64,000 nt of DNA, taken from positions 62,001-126,000 of the forward strand of contig NW_003314271.1 in the NCBI RefSeq assembly GCF_000143415.4, read 5' to 3'. Under the pieces are notes generated by a model. It did not search any database, was not told the DNA's origin, and was given only the letters and a program-made list of their open reading frames with translations. This stretch comes from Selaginella moellendorffii. Taxonomy: Eukaryota; Plantae; Lycopodiophyta. Positions 1-58,428 of the stretch are shown here, in pieces; position 1 is the first letter of the stretch, and the number at the start of each line of letters is the position of its first letter. Position numbers and translations under genes: made by a program.

Positions 1-601
1 ATCCTCATCCCACTTCATTGAAAGCTTGAGAGCATGCATAGCATGCTCTGTCTTTGGGACGTCTTGTGCAGGAGTCCAAATCCTCAGTTGAACATCCCTT
101 CCTGAACGCGTTTTAAAAGTATCGTCTCTGGACGTGAGTTGCCCCGCTACCAAGGCAAAGAGGTAGCAAGGCTTTTTGAAAGGATCCTCCCACACAGCAT
201 AATGAAATCCATTCTGACCACAGCACGTCAGGCTCTACACAATGCCAGTGAAGAAACAATGCCAACCTCGAGGTCTCCGGAGTCTATAAGGTTGCCATTC
301 GACAAAAGAACGGGATACTGTGCTTTGTCCGCTTCTATCCTGGTAGTGAACTTTGCCATAACGTCTGGCCGATCCTGTAATAGCTCGCCAGAATATCAGC
401 CAAACATTGTCACAAACAAAGACCTGATAAAAGGTTATTTTTCTAAAACCTTCAGCTTCGCATTGTGTACAAAACATGCCGCTGGAAGACTTGTAGAGCC
501 CCTGTTGGAGAAAAAAAAGTAACCATACTAAAAAACTTGATCCCACTTACTTCGAGAGACAAGTTAGTCTCCGGGTGTATCTCAGAGCCAATCTCTAAAT
601 C

Positions 602-2123
602 AAAAGGCTGAACAGGAAGTGACTCATTCTTCTATTTCACAGCCTCTGCCGTGTGAAGCACTAGACAACCTTTAACTCAACTCAGGTATGACAATGGCGC
701 ACCATAGAAACTCGTTTTGAATTGAAACTCAAAAGTTCCTTAAGACTAAAGGCAAACGATTGCTGGATCTCAGGCCTAGGATTGCCTTGGTAAACTTGGT
801 TTTGAGAAAAAATTAATGCTTTTTGAGATCAAGTCATAACATCAATGCTTTATTAAGGTTCACTTGTTAGAGTTTGTTCTTTTGCAAGAGGTAAAATGAA
901 AGTCTTCAAAAACTGTGTTGGACTTTCGTTGATTTCCGTTGACTTTGAGCTCTCAGGTCAGCTGGTGCATGTTCCCTTTCTTTCTTTTTTTTTTTTGTGT
1001 GAGACTCCTTTGATTTTGCTACAGTGGTAAAAAACTGTCAGGTAGTGTGGTAGGCCATAATTGTTTATGTTTGAGGGATTTGCAAAAGCTTCCCACAATA
1101 TTTGTTTCTCAAGGATATTATCTATCTATTGTTTATAATCTTGTGGTGCCCAACCGGGAAGCACGTGACAAATGAATGCAAGTGTTTGTGAAATTTGCTA
1201 ATATGAAAGAACAAGGATTTACTTTGGCATTGATCAAATTTGCAAGAATAGTTCTTGGATGCTGCCCTTCTAGACATCACCTGCACATATCTGCGAGAAA
1301 GAGCTTCCACTGTTCTAAGAGAATCGTCGTCTGATCAGCAAGACATTTACCTCCACGATTTTCTCTGAGGCTTCTGGGACCAGGATCGCTTCCACGAAAA
1401 CTTCTGCGACCTGATCCACGAGCCACAAGACCTTTTAGATGCATGCTTTCCTGCTAGAGTTTCTTACCTTATTTTGACAATTATGGTTAATCACTAGGAC
1501 TTATACTTACTTTCTCTTATTTTCAATCTACATATCTCTTATTAAATGGATATCTAAAGTCTCACAAGAAAGTATTTCATTTATTCAATCATCAAGGTTA
1601 AAACCATAAGTTCCCATGATGACCCAACATCAAAAAGCATGTAAAATGTTTAGTTAGTAAGACAATAAATTTTACTTTAGTCGAGAAAATAATTCAAAGT
1701 AGTAGTTAATGCCGTCCGCAGGCAAGGATCCTTATCGGCACTGGGCAAGATTAGCTCAAATTTGTTGTCATCCCAGACAATATGAGGCGATCAAGAACAC
1801 GAATCCCTCTAAACGCCCCATCCAAATCGTACTAGAAAATTCGGCCCAGCTCTCTAATTGCAAGTAGCTGGATAAAGAACGATATAATTTCCTCTCTTTA
1901 GTTAGCTAGTGTCTCTCTTGGTGAAAAGCTTAAAAGCCAAATGCCGGCCTGAGCTAAGGTTGACCAAGCCACGATAAGTCGAACACTTGGACTTTCTTAA
2001 GTCACTAGGAAAGACAATAGCACGTCAGAAACGCCCTCCTTATCACATTTGATCCATTCTTCTCCTGAAACGACCTCCTTATCACATCCAGAACCCTGAG
2101 AAAAGGCTGAACAGGAAGTGACT
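602..2123. other. 1,476-bp insertion (625-2100) flanked by a perfect 23-bp direct repeat AAAAGGCTGAACAGGAAGTGACT
   Basis: The repeat lies at 602-624 and 2101-2123. Removing the insert plus one copy restores the APN reading SLPVQPFDLEIG. Confidence 0.9.
627..1470 (+). repeat. Diverged direct copy of ~10609-11431 (last two exons and introns of the NAD(P)-binding gene plus downstream DNA)
   Basis: Colinear match by eye, e.g. CCTTTAACTCAACTCAGGTATGACAATGG and GCATGCTTTCCTGCTAGAGTTTCTTACCTT in both places. The copy carries a premature stop in the last exon. Confidence 0.9.
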
Positions 2124-3124
2124 TCAGCGTCAGATGACGGCTGGTGAGCGCAACTTCTTCCAGCTTCCGTTCTTCGTCGTTGATTTTAACAAAGAGAAGT
2201 TTCACGTCACGACCATCCAACACCAATGGCGGGCTTTCACCTGCATGGCTTCTGGTTAATGACTACCAAGATAGCGAACGAAACAACGAAAGTGAAAAAG
2301 AAAATACTTGAGTTTCTCGGCAAAACCCGGATCTTAAACACCACGGTTGTCTTTTTCTCAGACAACAAATTTCTCGACCTGGATAGAAGGTGGACAAAAC
2401 GAAATCAGCATCCAATTAGTACGGTGCGTTACCGTGTCAAAGTGATAGCCAGTGGGCTTGTAATCCTCCAAAAAGATCTCGTTGGGAGCCTCTTTGACAG
2501 CCATCTCTTCAGCTACAGGAGAAGCTCCAACACTCACTGTGGAGAATTGGCTAGACCCTGCAAAAGCACGCTACAGTTCGACATGCCTTAGTCCGTAAGC
2601 TTCGCGAAAATGGAAAAAAAAAAAACCTTCCGGCAATTTCAATTGGCTTCCGCGCACGCAACCAAGTTCCTACATTTTTTGTTCGAAGATGAGAACCAAA
2701 AACAATGCTTGAAACGAATTTCGAAGACAAGGCAAACGTGGAACTGGGTTTTCAGTACCGAGTGAAGCTCCTTGCCTGCAAAAGAGAGTAGCAAATTCAG
2801 AGGAAGTAAATTGACATGAAAAGGAAGGACCGAGAGAGAACAAAAAATCTGAAGCAAGAAGAAATAAAGCACCGGGAAAGCTCTGGTGGCTAATGACATT
2901 CGCGAGGAGACGGCCAAGACGAAACTGAGCCCTGATCTCTGGTGACGGTGGCCATTTTCTCCTCTAAAACCCCTAAAATCCAAAGACACAACACAGGCAG
3001 CTCCATTCTTTTAGAATGTCTACTGCTCGAGATCATCAAAGCACGAATGCGCTGCGCACAAAATTGCGAAAAACCTCTCGAGCAAATATTATCGCGCGCT
3101 CCTCTTCAACACGCCACTGAGGTA

Positions 3125-3200
3125 TTAAGGATTAAAAGTTACTAAGGACTAAAAGTTACTAAGAGAAGTTACTAAGGATTTAAAATTTACTACTAAGGAT
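3125..3200. repeat. Short degenerate tandem repeat of an AAAGTTACTAAG-like unit
   Basis: About 3-4 imperfect copies visible. Confidence 0.6.
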
Positions 3201-3246
3201 CGATCACCTCATTGATAAGACGATTTGCATTCAAGAAGAGATGGGA

Positions 3247-3970
3247 TTATTTGGGATTATCGATCCACAGCTCATGGGCAAGCTTGACAATCTCCTCCCC
3301 GGCCTTGCAAGGAGAGCCAGCATCGTATGGCGGCTGCGGATCATACTCGATCATCAGCTGCACCGCTTTGGCAATCTTCTCATTCGTGATGATCGAGGCC
3401 AAGTAGATGGCCATGTCGATCCCTGAAGAAACTCCTGCAGCGGTCACGATCTTTCCCTGCTTGATGTACCTCTGGCTCGTCACCTTGGCACCATATTCCT
3501 TAAGCTGCGGATACGCGGCCCAGTGCGTCGTGGCTTTCACGCCCTTGAGCAATCCCGCCGCGCCGAGGATCAGAGCTCCAGTGCACACTGAAGTGGTGAA
3601 TGTTGTGCATTCGTGAGCCTGGAAGATCGACACAAGAACAAGCAGGGCTGGATCGATCGAAATGGATGAAGAAACGAGCAATTACCTTGCGGATGTAGTC
3701 GAGGAGTGGCTTGTGATCTAACGGCAGGAGCTTGGTAGGGCCTCCTGGAACGAGCAGAATGTCAGGATTGGGCAGATCTTCAAAGCCGGAGCTTGCTTCA
3801 ATCTTGAATGTGCCTTCGTCTGCAACAACGAGGCCCGGCTTGTCGCTCACGAAGGTAACACTCACTCCCGGGAGGCGATGGAGCGCTTCGTACGGCCCAA
3901 TTGCATCCAACACAGTGATGTTGTTGAAGATTGGAATGGCTACCTTGATTGTCGATACCATTGGCTCCAT
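3247..3970 (-). CDS. Single-domain DJ-1/PfpI protein, isocyanide (isonitrile) hydratase-like, 218 aa, 2 exons (3686-3970, 3247-3618)
   Basis: Motifs LDAIGP, LLVPGG, TSVCTGALILGAAGLL, ATTHW, TAAGVSSGIDM and QLMIEYDPQPPYDAGSP. A 67-nt GT-AG intron at 3619-3685 keeps the frame. Confidence 0.9.
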
Positions 3971-22539: not shown

Positions 22540-24561
22540 ATGGGGAGGCATTCGTGCTGCCAGAAGCAAAAGCTCAAGAAAGGGCTATGGTCGCCAGAGG
22601 AGGACGAGAAGCTGGTGCGCTACATCACCAAGTATGGCCACAGCTGCTGGAGCACGGTGCCGGAGCAAGCCGGTCAGTAGCAATCGATCGCTCGAATGTG
22701 AGCCGCAAGATCACTCATCCATGGCGCTCGAATTATTTGCAGGATTGCAGCGATGCGGCAAGAGCTGCCGGCTCCGGTGGATCAATTACCTCCGCCCGGA
22801 CCTCAAGCGTGGGAATTTCACGTCGCACGAGGAGAAGCTCATCATCGATCTCCACGCGGCGCTTGGCAACCGGTAAAGAGAGATTCTTCGTTTGGTTTTC
22901 GTTGTGAGAATTCCTCTCATTTGATCGGGGATTCTTGTTCCAGATGGTCGCAGATCGCGGCGAGGCTGCCCGGGCGCACGGACAACGAGATCAAGAATTT
23001 CTGGAATTCTTGCATCAAGAAGAAGCTCAAGCAAATGGGGATTGATCCCAACACCCACAAGCCTCTGCTCGTGGCCACCTCCGCCGCTGCCGCCGCCGCC
23101 GCCGCCACTAGCCCCAGCGGCGCCGCCGCCGCCACCGCCACCACCACCCCGGACGCCAAATCACCCATCATCGAGCAGCAATTCCTGGACAAATCCAGCG
23201 CCAGCGCCGCCATGGTGATCACGCGACAACCCCCCAAACTGTTCGCCTGCCCCGAGGAGGACGACGATGGCGACGACGACACCATGGGTGGAGAGGACGC
23301 CGCCATGAATTTCAAGAATGCCGGTCGATCGGACCAGCACGACCCCCGGAAGTTCTCGTTTCTCGCGAGAACCAAGCCACCCCAGTTCTTCAGCTGCGGC
23401 AGCGATCGCGACGAGGACAACAACGCCATGACACCGCTCACACCGCCATCGTCTTCTTCGAATTCTTCCAGCTATGGATCACAGCAGCTCTATCGTCCAG
23501 CATTTGGGTTCTTCCCCCAGCAGCAGCAGCAGCAAGATCATCCTGGTTTCCTGCCACCAGCGATCAACAACTGGAACCAGCATTGGATCACGCAGCACGT
23601 CCCGCCCATGGCCGCGCCATTCTTCCACCCCGATCACGCCCACCATCCAATGCAGCAGCCGGCGCAAGCTTTCGGTGCCGGTACTAGTGCCTCCCTTTTC
23701 AATTCACCCAGCACGCTCAACAATGTGGCTCCAGTTCACGTTGGATCCTTGGTGTGGTATTTGCAGCAGCAGCAGCAACCGAGCATGATCGAGCAAAATC
23801 ACCACCACCACCACCACCACCAGCGGAGTTCTTCTGGTAGCCGAGCGGAAGAGCCCAGCTTTGGACACCAGGAGATCAAAGGCGACGTAGACGACGACTT
23901 TAGCGCCAAATACTGCGAGAATTTCCTCAAATTCGGTGACTTTGGCACTGGCGGGGATCCGGAGCGAGAATTCAGCAGCAGCCCCAGCGGCGGCGGCGAC
24001 GATGGCGAGCAAGGCTCGCCCGGCTGCTGCTCCAACGATCACGCCGCGTCGAGCTTGATGATCAAGCCACCGGTGGTGACGTCGAGGTGCTCCATCCCGG
24101 ACGATGGTGGTGGCAAGGAATCGCCGTCCATGGACACCAGCTGTAGCAATGCAAGTGGCGGGGACGGGGGATTCCAGTTCTGGGACACATGCACGACCAC
24201 GAGTAACAGTAGCGGCGGCGGCGGTGGCGGTGGTGGTGGTGGCGACGCCAAATTCAGCCTCCCGTTCCTCCGCGCCGCCTCCTCCGCCAATTCCTCCGAC
24301 GACGCCGCCTCCGACAGCTTCTCCAACTCGTCCATCCGGTGGAGCGAGCTCCTCCCCAGCCCCGCCATCGCGCCGCCGGTCTGCCATGGTGGCGCCGCCA
24401 TGGCAAAGCCGCGACAGCACAGCGATCAGTTTGGAGATTCATCGCCCTCCACGATTATGATCAAGTCGAGTGGTACGTCATGGTACGATCGTCGGGAGGA
24501 GGAGGAGGAGTTCTCGCCGGAGCTCCAGCGGATTGCGGCAGCTTTGGATCAAATCATTTAA
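22540..24561 (+). CDS. R2R3-MYB transcription factor, subgroup 13-like (MYB50/55/61/86), 3 exons
   Basis: [77 protein letters not shown]. Long low-complexity C-terminus ending [12 protein letters not shown]. Confidence 0.95.
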
Positions 24562-55612: not shown

Positions 55613-55992
55613 TTTGGGAAGGGGAAAGCGCCTATTCTAGGTGGCCATGGGTATATTCCCAGGACCGTTTTTTGATACCATTCCCTTTAAAAGTCCACCC
55701 CCTGCCGTTTGTGTGTGCATGCCAAACGATCCATCTATCAGTTATCTATCGTTGAGTCACCGTTGGATCTTTGGCATTTTGTTGCGTCACCGTAGGATCG
55801 TGGCCTTTTCCTGGTGGAAAGAATCTTGGCAGTTTGCCGTACAAGGCCAGGTAGGGTTTATGTTCTCCCTTGCGAGCGCGCGTGGCAATGCAGAACGATC
55901 GTCGCCGGGATCATCGATTAGGAGTCCCATCCACTGGCGCTCGTGATCTTTCGAGGTAAGGCGGCGGTTCTTTGACACGCGCATGGATCTTG

Positions 55993-58428
55993 ATGATCCG
56001 CCGTGCGCGCGCGCGGCAATGCAAGCGAATCGGCGCCAGATTTTGCAAGCTGAGAGGGGTATCGGCGGGATTTTGCAAGGCTGGCAGGGATTTCGATGTC
56101 GCCGCCTTGATCTCGGCCTTGAAGGATTCCAGGGACCTGCGGAGCTGCAAGAGGCATCACATTGATGCGGTTGAGAAGGGTCTTTGCTCCAACATCCTCG
56201 TCGCCAACACGCTGATTCGAGTGTACGCCAGGTGTGGGAGCTTGGCCGATGCTCGCAGCGTTTTCGAGTCACTGGAAGTCCCGGATGTGGTGTCCTGGAA
56301 TGCGCTACTTCAGGGATACGTCGAGAATGGGGAGAGCCGGCAAGCTCTGGTATTGCTTGGAAGAATGGAACAGGAGGGGTGTCTTCCAGATGGTAGAACT
56401 TTCGTCACAGCTCTCAAGGCTTGCTCGAGTCTAGCAACCAAAGAAGGAAATGCGAAGAAGGTGGAGTACGTGAAGGTGGCCAAGGTTTGCCACTGTGAGG
56501 CCATAGATTCGAGGCAACTAGACATCTTTGTGGCGAACACATTGGTTGATACTTTAGCCAAGTGTGGGAGATTGGAGGATGCTCGTTTGGTTTTCGAGAT
56601 GATGCCAAGTCATGACGTTGTTTCTTGGACAGCTTTGGTGCTCGGACATGTCGACAACGAACAGTGTGAGACCGCTTTGGAGCTGTTTGAACTTATGCAC
56701 TCGAGGGGCTGCATTGGGAATGCCCGGACTTTCTCCTCGGCTCTGACGGGGTGTTCTAGACTGGCAGATAAGGAAGAAGCTAAGCTAGTCGACGGGTCTC
56801 TTGTGAAGGCCGAAAGTCTTGCAGTTGGGATGGCGATTCACTCACGAGCATCAAGCAGTGGCTGTGACTCAGACGTTTTCGTTGGGAACACTTTGCTCGA
56901 CATGTACGTCAAGTGTGGCAGCATGATTAGAGCTCGGCGGGTTTTCGATGGGATGAAGCTTCATGATGTGGTATCGTGGACTACGCTGACACAGGGATAT
57001 GCCGAGAACGGTGAGCCAGTGGTGGCTTTACAGCTCTACGCTCGCATGAAGCTGGCAGGATGTAAACCGGATTCCAGGTGCTACGTCGCCGCGCTTTTGG
57101 CTTGCTCGAGTTTGGCAGCGGCTGAAAAACTCCGGGAGTCCAGTGGGAGCTTGGTGACGCTCGAGTGCTTGGACAAAACCAGGATGGTCTACCAGGAAGC
57201 TGTAAGCAGTGGATTCGGGCAGGATATCTACGTCAACACGGCAGCAGTTCGTGCATATTCAAAGTGTGGGAGCAGCGGTGGTGCTCGACTGATATTCGAC
57301 AACGTGGCACACCGGGACACTTTCCTGTGGAACGCAATGCTTCTGGGACATGTTGAAAACGGGGAAAGCGACTCAGCACTTGGACTGTTTGCAGTAATGC
57401 AAGAACAGGGTCACAAAGGAGATCCTCGGACTCTCAGTGCGGTATTGACGGCTTGTGCAAACTTGGGAGTCAAAGCAGAGAAAGCAGAACCATTATTATC
57501 AGATGGAATGAAGGCCAAGTATCTGGAACAGGGGATGGCTTTACACTTCGAAGCATCAAACTCGGGGTTTGACAAGTCGGACATATTCGTGGGGAACGCT
57601 CTGGTTGACATGTACGCAAAGTGTGGGAGCCTGGAGCGTGCCACGGAGGTTTTCCGCAGCATGCCGCGCAGGGACGTGGTGTCGTGGACTTCCATGATTC
57701 TGGGATACGCCGGGAATGGCAGAGCAGCGCTAGCCTTAGAGCTGTTCTTCTCCGGCATGGACGTCGCGGCAAACGCTAGAACTTACGTGGCTGCGCTTGT
57801 GGCTTGCGGCGACTTGGTGGCACTGGAAAGTGGGAAGCGCGTCGAGGCTCGAGTTTACAGGAGTGGAGTGGAGAGCGATCCGGTGGTGGCAACCGCGCTG
57901 GTGGATTTTTACGGGAACTGTGGAGACATGGCTGCTGGGCGGCGAGTTTTTGACTGGAGCTCGCCAAGGGACGTGAAGCAGTGGAACGCAGTGATCGGGG
58001 GCTACTCTCGATCCGGAGAGATCGACCAGGCATTGTCGCTGTTCCAGAGGACGAGGGACGAGAGCTTGCGAGCTGACGCCATCACTTTCTTCTCCATTCT
58101 CTCGGCTTGCAGCCACGCCGGAGAGATCGACAGGGGGCGGGAGTGTTTCCAGGCCATGGCCGAGTTTGGCATCGCCCCGAGCGTCCAGCACTACTCGTGC
58201 CTGATCGATCTGTTTGGCCGAGCCTCGAGACTGCGCGAAGCAGTGGAGCTTCTCGAGGCTATGCCCCTCCTCAAGGCCGATCGTGTTGCGCGGATGACGG
58301 TCTTGAGCGCGTGCCAGCGCTGGAAAGACGCTGGAACAGGAAAGAATGTGTTTGATTCTCTGTTGGAACCCGATGATAAATGTAACAGTGCTCAAGCATT
58401 GGCGTTCATGGCAAACGCAAATTCGTAG
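55993..58428 (+). CDS. PLS-class PPR protein (organellar RNA-editing factor type), intronless, ends within the E domain, no DYW
   Basis: Repeated DIFVGNALVDMYAKCGSL..A..VF..M...DVVSWT units, ITFFSILSACSHAG, HYSCLIDLFGRA. First ATG at 55993. Confidence 0.92.
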   Translation: MIRRARARQCKRIGARFCKLRGVSAGFCKAGRDFDVAALISALKDSRDLRSCKRHHIDAVEKGLCSNILVANTLIRVYARCGSLADARSVFESLEVPDVVSWNALLQGYVENGESRQALVLLGRMEQEGCLPDGRTFVTALKACSSLATKEGNAKKVEYVKVAKVCHCEAIDSRQLDIFVANTLVDTLAKCGRLEDARLVFEMMPSHDVVSWTALVLGHVDNEQCETALELFELMHSRGCIGNARTFSSALTGCSRLADKEEAKLVDGSLVKAESLAVGMAIHSRASSSGCDSDVFVGNTLLDMYVKCGSMIRARRVFDGMKLHDVVSWTTLTQGYAENGEPVVALQLYARMKLAGCKPDSRCYVAALLACSSLAAAEKLRESSGSLVTLECLDKTRMVYQEAVSSGFGQDIYVNTAAVRAYSKCGSSGGARLIFDNVAHRDTFLWNAMLLGHVENGESDSALGLFAVMQEQGHKGDPRTLSAVLTACANLGVKAEKAEPLLSDGMKAKYLEQGMALHFEASNSGFDKSDIFVGNALVDMYAKCGSLERATEVFRSMPRRDVVSWTSMILGYAGNGRAALALELFFSGMDVAANARTYVAALVACGDLVALESGKRVEARVYRSGVESDPVVATALVDFYGNCGDMAAGRRVFDWSSPRDVKQWNAVIGGYSRSGEIDQALSLFQRTRDESLRADAITFFSILSACSHAGEIDRGRECFQAMAEFGIAPSVQHYSCLIDLFGRASRLREAVELLEAMPLLKADRVARMTVLSACQRWKDAGTGKNVFDSLLEPDDKCNSAQALAFMANANS

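Follow-up and report, generated by a model that had tools for sequence, protein, structure and literature searches.

We found that the window analysed here, a 64,000-nt stretch of DNA from the lycophyte Selaginella moellendorffii (positions 62001-126000 of scaffold GL377575.1, assembly GCA_000143415.2), carries an intact two-exon gene, LOC9631597, which is already annotated and is uncharacterised. The best overall explanation, to which we give a probability of roughly 70%, is that this is an isocyanide hydratase (ICH)-type gene which reached plants in one old transfer from bacteria and has since been inherited vertically. Because the same introns are found in liverworts, mosses, clubmosses and a fern, any bacterial transfer would be ancient and not specific to Selaginella. 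The named matches behind this picture were the best 120 of more than 8000, so "ancient" and "transfer" are the best-supported terms for the history of the gene and not proven ones.

The gene lies on the minus strand, where positions 3970 to 3247 run exactly from ATG to stop and encode a single-domain DJ-1/PfpI protein of 218 aa. Its features are as follows.

3686..3970, minus strand: exon 1, 95 codons, with the ATG at 3970-3968 and Asp22 (codon 3907-3905) in LDAIGP.
3619..3685, minus strand: intron 1, 67 nt, GTAATT..TTCCAG (GT..AG), phase 0, between K95 and A96.
3247..3618, minus strand: exon 2, 123 codons plus the TAA stop at 3249-3247, with Cys107 (codon 3585-3583) in SVCTG, and with ATTHW.
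Within exon 2, minus strand: residues A155-A156-G157-V158, aligned with G149-G150-G151-I152 of ICH.
3456..3457, minus strand: former position of ancestral intron 2, now lost, where the coding sequence continues uninterrupted from Q149 to G150.
3310..3348, minus strand: C-terminal ICH-clade motif EYDPQPPYDAGSP, residues 186-198.

The sequence-only reading had described a single 218-aa domain with D22 in LDAIGP, C107 in SVCTG, ATTHW and the C-terminal EYDPQPPYDAGSP, and all of these are present in the translated exons. The exons were translated and searched separately, and all full-length work used the database protein P0001 (XP_024528907.1, LOC9631597, "uncharacterized protein", Selaginella moellendorffii, 218 aa). 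This entry was found by a word search with a 144-aa ORF containing exon 2, scored on exon 2 only. Compared piecewise, its first 95 residues are those of exon 1 and its last 123 are those of exon 2. No signal or transit peptide was apparent in the 218-aa protein, in contrast to some moss paralogues, and the best explanation is that it is a cytosolic, single-domain DJ-1/PfpI protein of the ICH type.

We assigned the family from profile, sequence and fold searches. Pfam DJ-1_PfpI (PF01965) matched both exons collinearly, at profile positions 2-72 and 96-160 of 165 (exon 1: 25.5 bits, E 1.3e-5; exon 2: 47.6 bits, E 2.2e-12; cut-off 26.6), and the database entry P0001 is annotated with the same family. 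The best PDB sequence matches of both exons were Pseudomonas ICH (3NON/6NI4/6NI5; phmmer E 1e-28 for exon 2 and 1e-8 for exon 1). This search aligned PfICH Asp17 to D22, Cys101 to C107 and the tail EYAPAPPFNAGSP to EYDPQPPYDAGSP. An AlphaFold model from a 27-sequence plant alignment had a pLDDT of 92.5, with residues 1-4 disordered. When the model was searched with Foldseek, the top matches were all PfICH (E 8e-22, TM 0.81, 37-38% identity), and generic DJ-1 and PfpI proteins followed at least 9 orders of magnitude behind. The earlier assignment to an ICH-type single-domain DJ-1/PfpI protein is therefore upheld, with Pseudomonas ICH first in both the PDB sequence search and the fold search.

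With the ICH/InhA of P. fluorescens and P. putida (EC 4.2.1.103; 3NON, 6NI4), the spikemoss protein shares a single DJ-1/PfpI domain of about 220-230 aa, the catalytic Cys (C101/C107) with a Thr after it, the Asp (D17/D22) that replaces the DJ-1 Glu, and the C-terminal segment E-Y-x-P-x-P-P-[FY]-x-x-G-S-P. D22 was kept in 94 of 94 alignment rows and C107 in 92 of 94, and the E, Y, P and G of the tail were invariant or nearly so across the clade. The two differ in that identity is only 37-38%, that G149-G150-G151-I152 of ICH reads A-A-G-V here, and that the spikemoss gene is eukaryotic and has a spliceosomal intron, with an activity predicted by homology. The canonical plant DJ-1/glyoxalase III proteins (Arabidopsis DJ-1a-f) have the superfamily fold and the nucleophile-elbow Cys in common with it, whereas they consist of two domains in tandem and pair the Cys with a Glu (PMC3160306, PMC8170915); Arabidopsis DJ-1D (PDB 4OFW) was a marginal sequence match (E 1.5e-5). 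The contrast with angiosperm DJ-1 proteins had been offered as an argument, but it has no bearing on the genome of a lycophyte.

By homology, at ~38% identity, the protein is probably a Cys-dependent isocyanide hydratase. The gene could also be an old plant gene for some other Cys-dependent hydrolase, amidase or glyoxalase-type enzyme, or for a GlxA/FtrA-like small-molecule sensor. In PfICH, the diglycyl G150-G151 is conserved and is followed by the strained Ile152, by which helix H is gated (bioRxiv 10.1101/524751). The ICH diglycyl motif with its Ile152 is not kept in the spikemoss protein, which has A156-G157-V158 and retains the second Gly alone, and A156-G157-V158 is common to the whole plant clade and the nearest bacterial clade. 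This weakens the claim of ICH membership while leaving activity possible; the G150A variant of PfICH is active, with lower turnover (bioRxiv 10.1101/524751). A function other than ICH is also favoured by the 38% identity to the assayed enzyme and by the matches of exon 2 to the NCBIfam models for AraC-type FtrA (57.5 bits, cut-off 425, E 1e-15) and GbdR (37.6 bits, cut-off 480, E 1e-9). Since the subfamily also supplies AraC-type sensor domains (FtrA, GbdR), the substrate could be something else.

Membership among the AraC-type regulators nevertheless failed, with NCBIfam scores under the cut-offs and no HTH or other DNA-binding domain in the 218 aa. Membership among the glyoxalase III/PfpI deglycases failed as well, at scores far under the cut-offs (TIGR01383, 24.5 against 131; TIGR01382, 22.7 against 139; NF040823, 17 against 330). 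In structure and sequence searches of solved proteins, ICH accounted for all of the top matches, and the protein has both the Asp in place of the DJ-1 Glu, as in ICH, and the ICH-type C-terminal segment. We consider a non-ICH function possible, though clearly the less probable outcome.

If the protein is an ICH, it would be expected to form a homodimer, and its chemistry to resemble that of the bacterial enzyme, in which thiolate attack gives a thioimidate, the Asp acts as acid/base and hydrolysis yields an N-formamide (PMC12570138, bioRxiv 10.1101/524751). The role of PfICH Asp17 as the acid/base partner of the Cys has been described (PMC12570138). By homology with P. fluorescens ICH, the Cys107 thiolate would attack the isocyanide carbon to form a thioimidate, Asp22 would serve as the general acid/base, and hydrolysis would free the N-substituted formamide. 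Fungal isocyanide synthase clusters often include isocyanide hydratases, for which self-protection has been hypothesised (PMC10153163). In view of this, plants exposed to soil could plausibly use such enzymes for detoxification, a role to which we would give about even odds.

To describe the distribution in plants, we searched with a liverwort homologue as the query and with a plant profile. Among the best 120 of more than 8000 matches, the named eukaryotic ones were land plants only. They came from Calypogeia, Riccia, Marchantia polymorpha and M. paleacea, from Sphagnum (two species), Ceratodon (at least 5 loci) and Diphasiastrum (3 loci), and from the fern Ceratopteris richardii, whose protein was near the bottom of the profile list. 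No seed-plant homologue was among these best 120 of more than 8000 named matches. Two further Selaginella loci, SELMODRAFT_91146 and SELMODRAFT_271053, were identified. The Marchantia polymorpha homologues are auto-annotated as "cyclohexyl-isocyanide hydratase". The gene is no peculiarity of this genome: orthologues with conserved intron positions are carried by liverworts and mosses, by the two orders of lycophytes and by a fern. With an old origin that is common to different plant lineages, the locus tells little about this genome in particular.

Several features of individual plant homologues were also observed. In one moss subclade, three proteins (P0151, P0257 and P0163, from Ceratodon purpureus and a moss-like sequence) have hydrophobic, signal-peptide-like N-terminal extensions, which suggests from their sequences that the ICH-like proteins of this subclade are secreted or compartmentalised. 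In a liverwort clade, P0247 (Marchantia polymorpha) and P0314 have a Gly for the catalytic Cys (SVGSG, SVGTG) and are probable non-catalytic paralogues. Tandem pairs of ICH-like genes were found in Marchantia (L002 179-4085), as in Selaginella, and apparent tandem pairs in Diphasiastrum (O6H91_01G045200/045300) and Ceratodon (M758_7G145900/146300). Local duplication of the ICH-like gene is recurrent.

Exon structures were solved exactly for 7 other plant genes, including those of a liverwort, a moss, a clubmoss, a fern and two Selaginella paralogues. Intron 1 was located at the identical phase-0 site, between [RQKV]K and [AV]H, in 8 of 8 plant genes with the window copy included. Intron 2, also in phase 0 and located between [QEH] and GK, was present in 7 of 7 other plant genes and absent from the window copy. 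The window gene reads through the junction of Q149 and G150 (3457 and 3456), and intron 2 has therefore been lost from it. Compared with the land-plant ICH-like clade (Marchantia polymorpha, SELMODRAFT_91146, SELMODRAFT_271053), the window gene shares membership of the clade (100/96), length, motifs and intron 1, and it differs in that the window copy and its near-identical duplicates have no intron 2.

We constructed a phylogenetic tree with IQ-TREE (LG+C20+F+G4) from 94 rows and 224 columns, of which 34 rows were from plants. The plant sequences formed one clade, supported at 100/96 and recovered in 200 of 200 bootstrap trees. Three groups within it were each monophyletic: Selaginella (100/92), the liverworts (94/91) and the mosses (99/87). 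The branches between the major plant lineages were weak (55-67), so agreement with the species tree is coarse only. The sequence-only reading had named orthologues throughout streptophytes that follow the species tree as evidence against its proposal of horizontal transfer. What we found amounts in substance to this pattern for the non-seed land plants, with each major lineage monophyletic. A single plant grouping was also recovered with FastTree. With 238 tips there was one plant clade of named plants and 15 unnamed sequences (support 99), and with 550 tips the SH support was 95; with 319 tips the plant sequences had a single common ancestor, at a node that was not starred.

A rival history, implied by the sequence-only reading, is recent transfer from a bacterium into Selaginella, with an intron gained afterwards. 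It is suggested by exon 2 alone, for which the best non-self matches are metagenomic or actinobacterial at 63-71% identity, above the liverwort match at 61%. The full-length trees, in contrast, place all Selaginella copies in the plant-only clade (100/96), the liverwort, moss, clubmoss and fern genes and two Selaginella paralogues have intron 1 at exactly this phase-0 position, and the three paralogue lineages of Selaginella, with a mutual identity of only 57-60%, are old. Given the shared intron positions and the monophyly of the plants, we regard a recent, lineage-specific acquisition as refuted, with almost no probability left to it. The proposal of horizontal transfer survives in part: a bacterial origin is plausible, with the plant clade nested among mostly Actinomycetota, whereas a recent or lineage-specific acquisition does not agree with intron sites that are shared across plants.

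The position of the plant clade among bacteria was examined further. Plants and 22 bacterial rows grouped together at 100/96, and the stem of the plant clade was short (0.25 changes per site). The 22 bacterial rows were mainly Acidimicrobiia, Ilumatobacteraceae, Iamiaceae, Baekduia and Pseudonocardia, with a few Pseudomonadota and Myxococcota MAGs, and the group as a whole was nested in a wider, largely actinobacterial radiation. The nearest non-plant relatives were "DJ-1/PfpI family proteins" of ~210 aa from Actinomycetota (Acidimicrobiia, Solirubrobacterales, Streptomyces). These share with the plant protein 47-56% identity over the full length, the catalytic residues, A-A-G-V and EYDPQPP, and differ in being encoded by intronless genes in dense bacterial operons and in being uncharacterised. 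The near-sister P0176, for example, is found in a dense, intronless bacterial operon. In the neighbourhoods of 80 bacterial homologues we found lineage synteny only (LeuRS, FadB-like) and no link to isocyanides, and a cluster of 39 antisense or unassignable ORFs in those neighbourhoods had no Pfam match. The family is very large, with 22,156 clusters at 50% identity and E<=1e-3 in a HMMER search of 1.84 billion entries. The top two-domain matches of this search were considered as close relatives and rejected, as their scores are the sum of two weaker domains.

Another alternative is that plants received no transfer and that the gene descended vertically from an ancestor among early eukaryotes or archaeplastids, with many losses on the way. 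In its favour, the named eukaryotic matches come from the best 120 of more than 8000, so that members in algae and other eukaryotes may lie beyond them, and fungi are reported to have isocyanide hydratase genes in isocyanide synthase clusters (PMC10153163). Set against this are the position of the plant clade inside a bacterial grouping (100/96) on a short stem of 0.25 changes per site, and the restriction of the named eukaryotic matches to land plants among those best 120 of more than 8000. In addition, all 10 representatives whose names were looked up among the best 150 were bacterial or metagenomic, and only 2 of the 150 fell in the plant clade. We consider descent without any transfer improbable.

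The history that we prefer, one old bacterial-to-plant transfer, would run as follows, with its direction and date inferred from the trees and introns. There would have been a single entry into plants, no later than in the shared ancestor of vascular plants and bryophytes, and the most likely donor would be a soil bacterium close to present-day Actinomycetota. Two phase-0 introns would have been gained in plants after the transfer, and the gene would then have been passed on vertically to liverworts, mosses and lycophytes and to at least one fern. Recent tandem or segmental duplication in Selaginella would have produced a young set of copies that lack intron 2. In the literature searched, neither a plant ICH nor this family among plant HGT genes is described, and the family is absent from the main table of Yue et al. 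2012.

Selaginella has at least three old paralogue lineages, their age following from a mutual identity of 57-60%. The young set (P0001, P0123, P0121 and P0125) is 95-99% identical and is located on two scaffolds. The copy on GL377571.1 is 94% identical and has the same one-intron structure, with an intron identical to that of the window copy; as it too is without intron 2, the loss predates the young duplications. The window copy is the odd one out of the young set. There are 10 amino-acid differences between P0001 and its scaffold-mate P0123, all in residues 2-79 and four of them in the first nine. Between the window copy and that on GL377571.1 there are 9 non-synonymous and 3 synonymous changes in exon 1, and one of each in exon 2. 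With only 14 differences, the exon 1 dN/dS ratio is near 1 on too few changes to test selection, and it gives no positive evidence of recent constraint on the window copy.

The changes in exon 1 relative to the near copy (9 non-synonymous, 3 synonymous) could indicate a duplicate that is unexpressed or decaying into a pseudogene, and no transcript contig with the exact product of the window copy is on record. Contamination of the assembly was considered as well. On the other side, the frame is open, the splice sites are canonical and every family-invariant residue is intact in the window copy; four of the 10 amino-acid changes lie in the first nine residues, and residues 1-4 are disordered in the model. 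The GC content of the gene (53-55%) can be set beside that of the window (48%), and the scaffold of 3.09 Mb has plant genes on both sides of the locus. We therefore agree with the sequence-only reading that the gene is not a contaminant: contamination is excluded by the spliceosomal intron and by synteny, that is, plant neighbours on a 3.09-Mb scaffold and a 94%-identical copy on a second scaffold. Taken together, contamination or incipient decay is very unlikely, and an intact gene of old descent is the reading that we retain.

A broader interpretation can be offered tentatively. Non-seed land plants may have kept working isocyanide hydratases of bacterial origin since the colonisation of land, including secreted forms in mosses, that neutralise or sense the copper-binding antimicrobial isocyanides of soil fungi and bacteria, with loss in seed plants. 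We regard this full scenario as rather unlikely as a whole. Microbial isocyanides include xanthocillin-type and chalkophore isocyanides. Should the plant proteins prove to hydrate isocyanides, no earlier enzyme from a plant would be known for this microbial metabolite class. The history, if true, would be a clean case of an ancient bacterial gene retained by bryophytes, lycophytes and ferns. Of practical value is the set of orthologues in tractable models, namely Marchantia and mosses such as Ceratodon.

We also analyzed the genes around the locus. The called neighbours are intact and comprise a 214-aa gene without domains, an NmrA/epimerase-like gene, a DCN1-like/cullin-binding gene and two M1 aminopeptidase genes. 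The gene had been described as lying in an otherwise decayed region, which does not fit these ordinary, intact neighbours. Features located elsewhere in the window are as follows.

Window 1-2772, minus strand (L001 11467-20724): two M1 aminopeptidase (aminopeptidase N) genes in tandem, immediately downstream of the DJ-1 gene.
Window 22753-24558, plus strand: ORF of 602 aa with a Myb-like DNA-binding motif, an ordinary plant gene.
Window 55972-58425, plus strand: intronless PPR-repeat ORF of 818 aa, an ordinary plant gene.

Two fused GenBank models, P0124 (673 aa) and P0259 (353 aa), were considered as real fusions and rejected, being chimeric predictions that join the DJ-1 gene to the M1 aminopeptidase and NmrA-like genes downstream. 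The JGI name "aminopeptidase N" is carried by two moss-like DJ-1 homologues, P0155 and P0492 (236-237 aa), and may have been propagated from the P0124 and P0259 chimeras. At one of the other Selaginella loci, a 635-aa gene without Pfam matches (L090 265-2648) lies on the same strand as SELMODRAFT_271053 (3001-3762) and ends 353 nt upstream of it. In the window, a 17-nt unit, TAAGGATTAAAAGTTAC, is repeated in tandem about four times at 3126-3192, 55 nt past the stop codon, and this array is probably in the 3' UTR of the gene or in the intergenic spacer.
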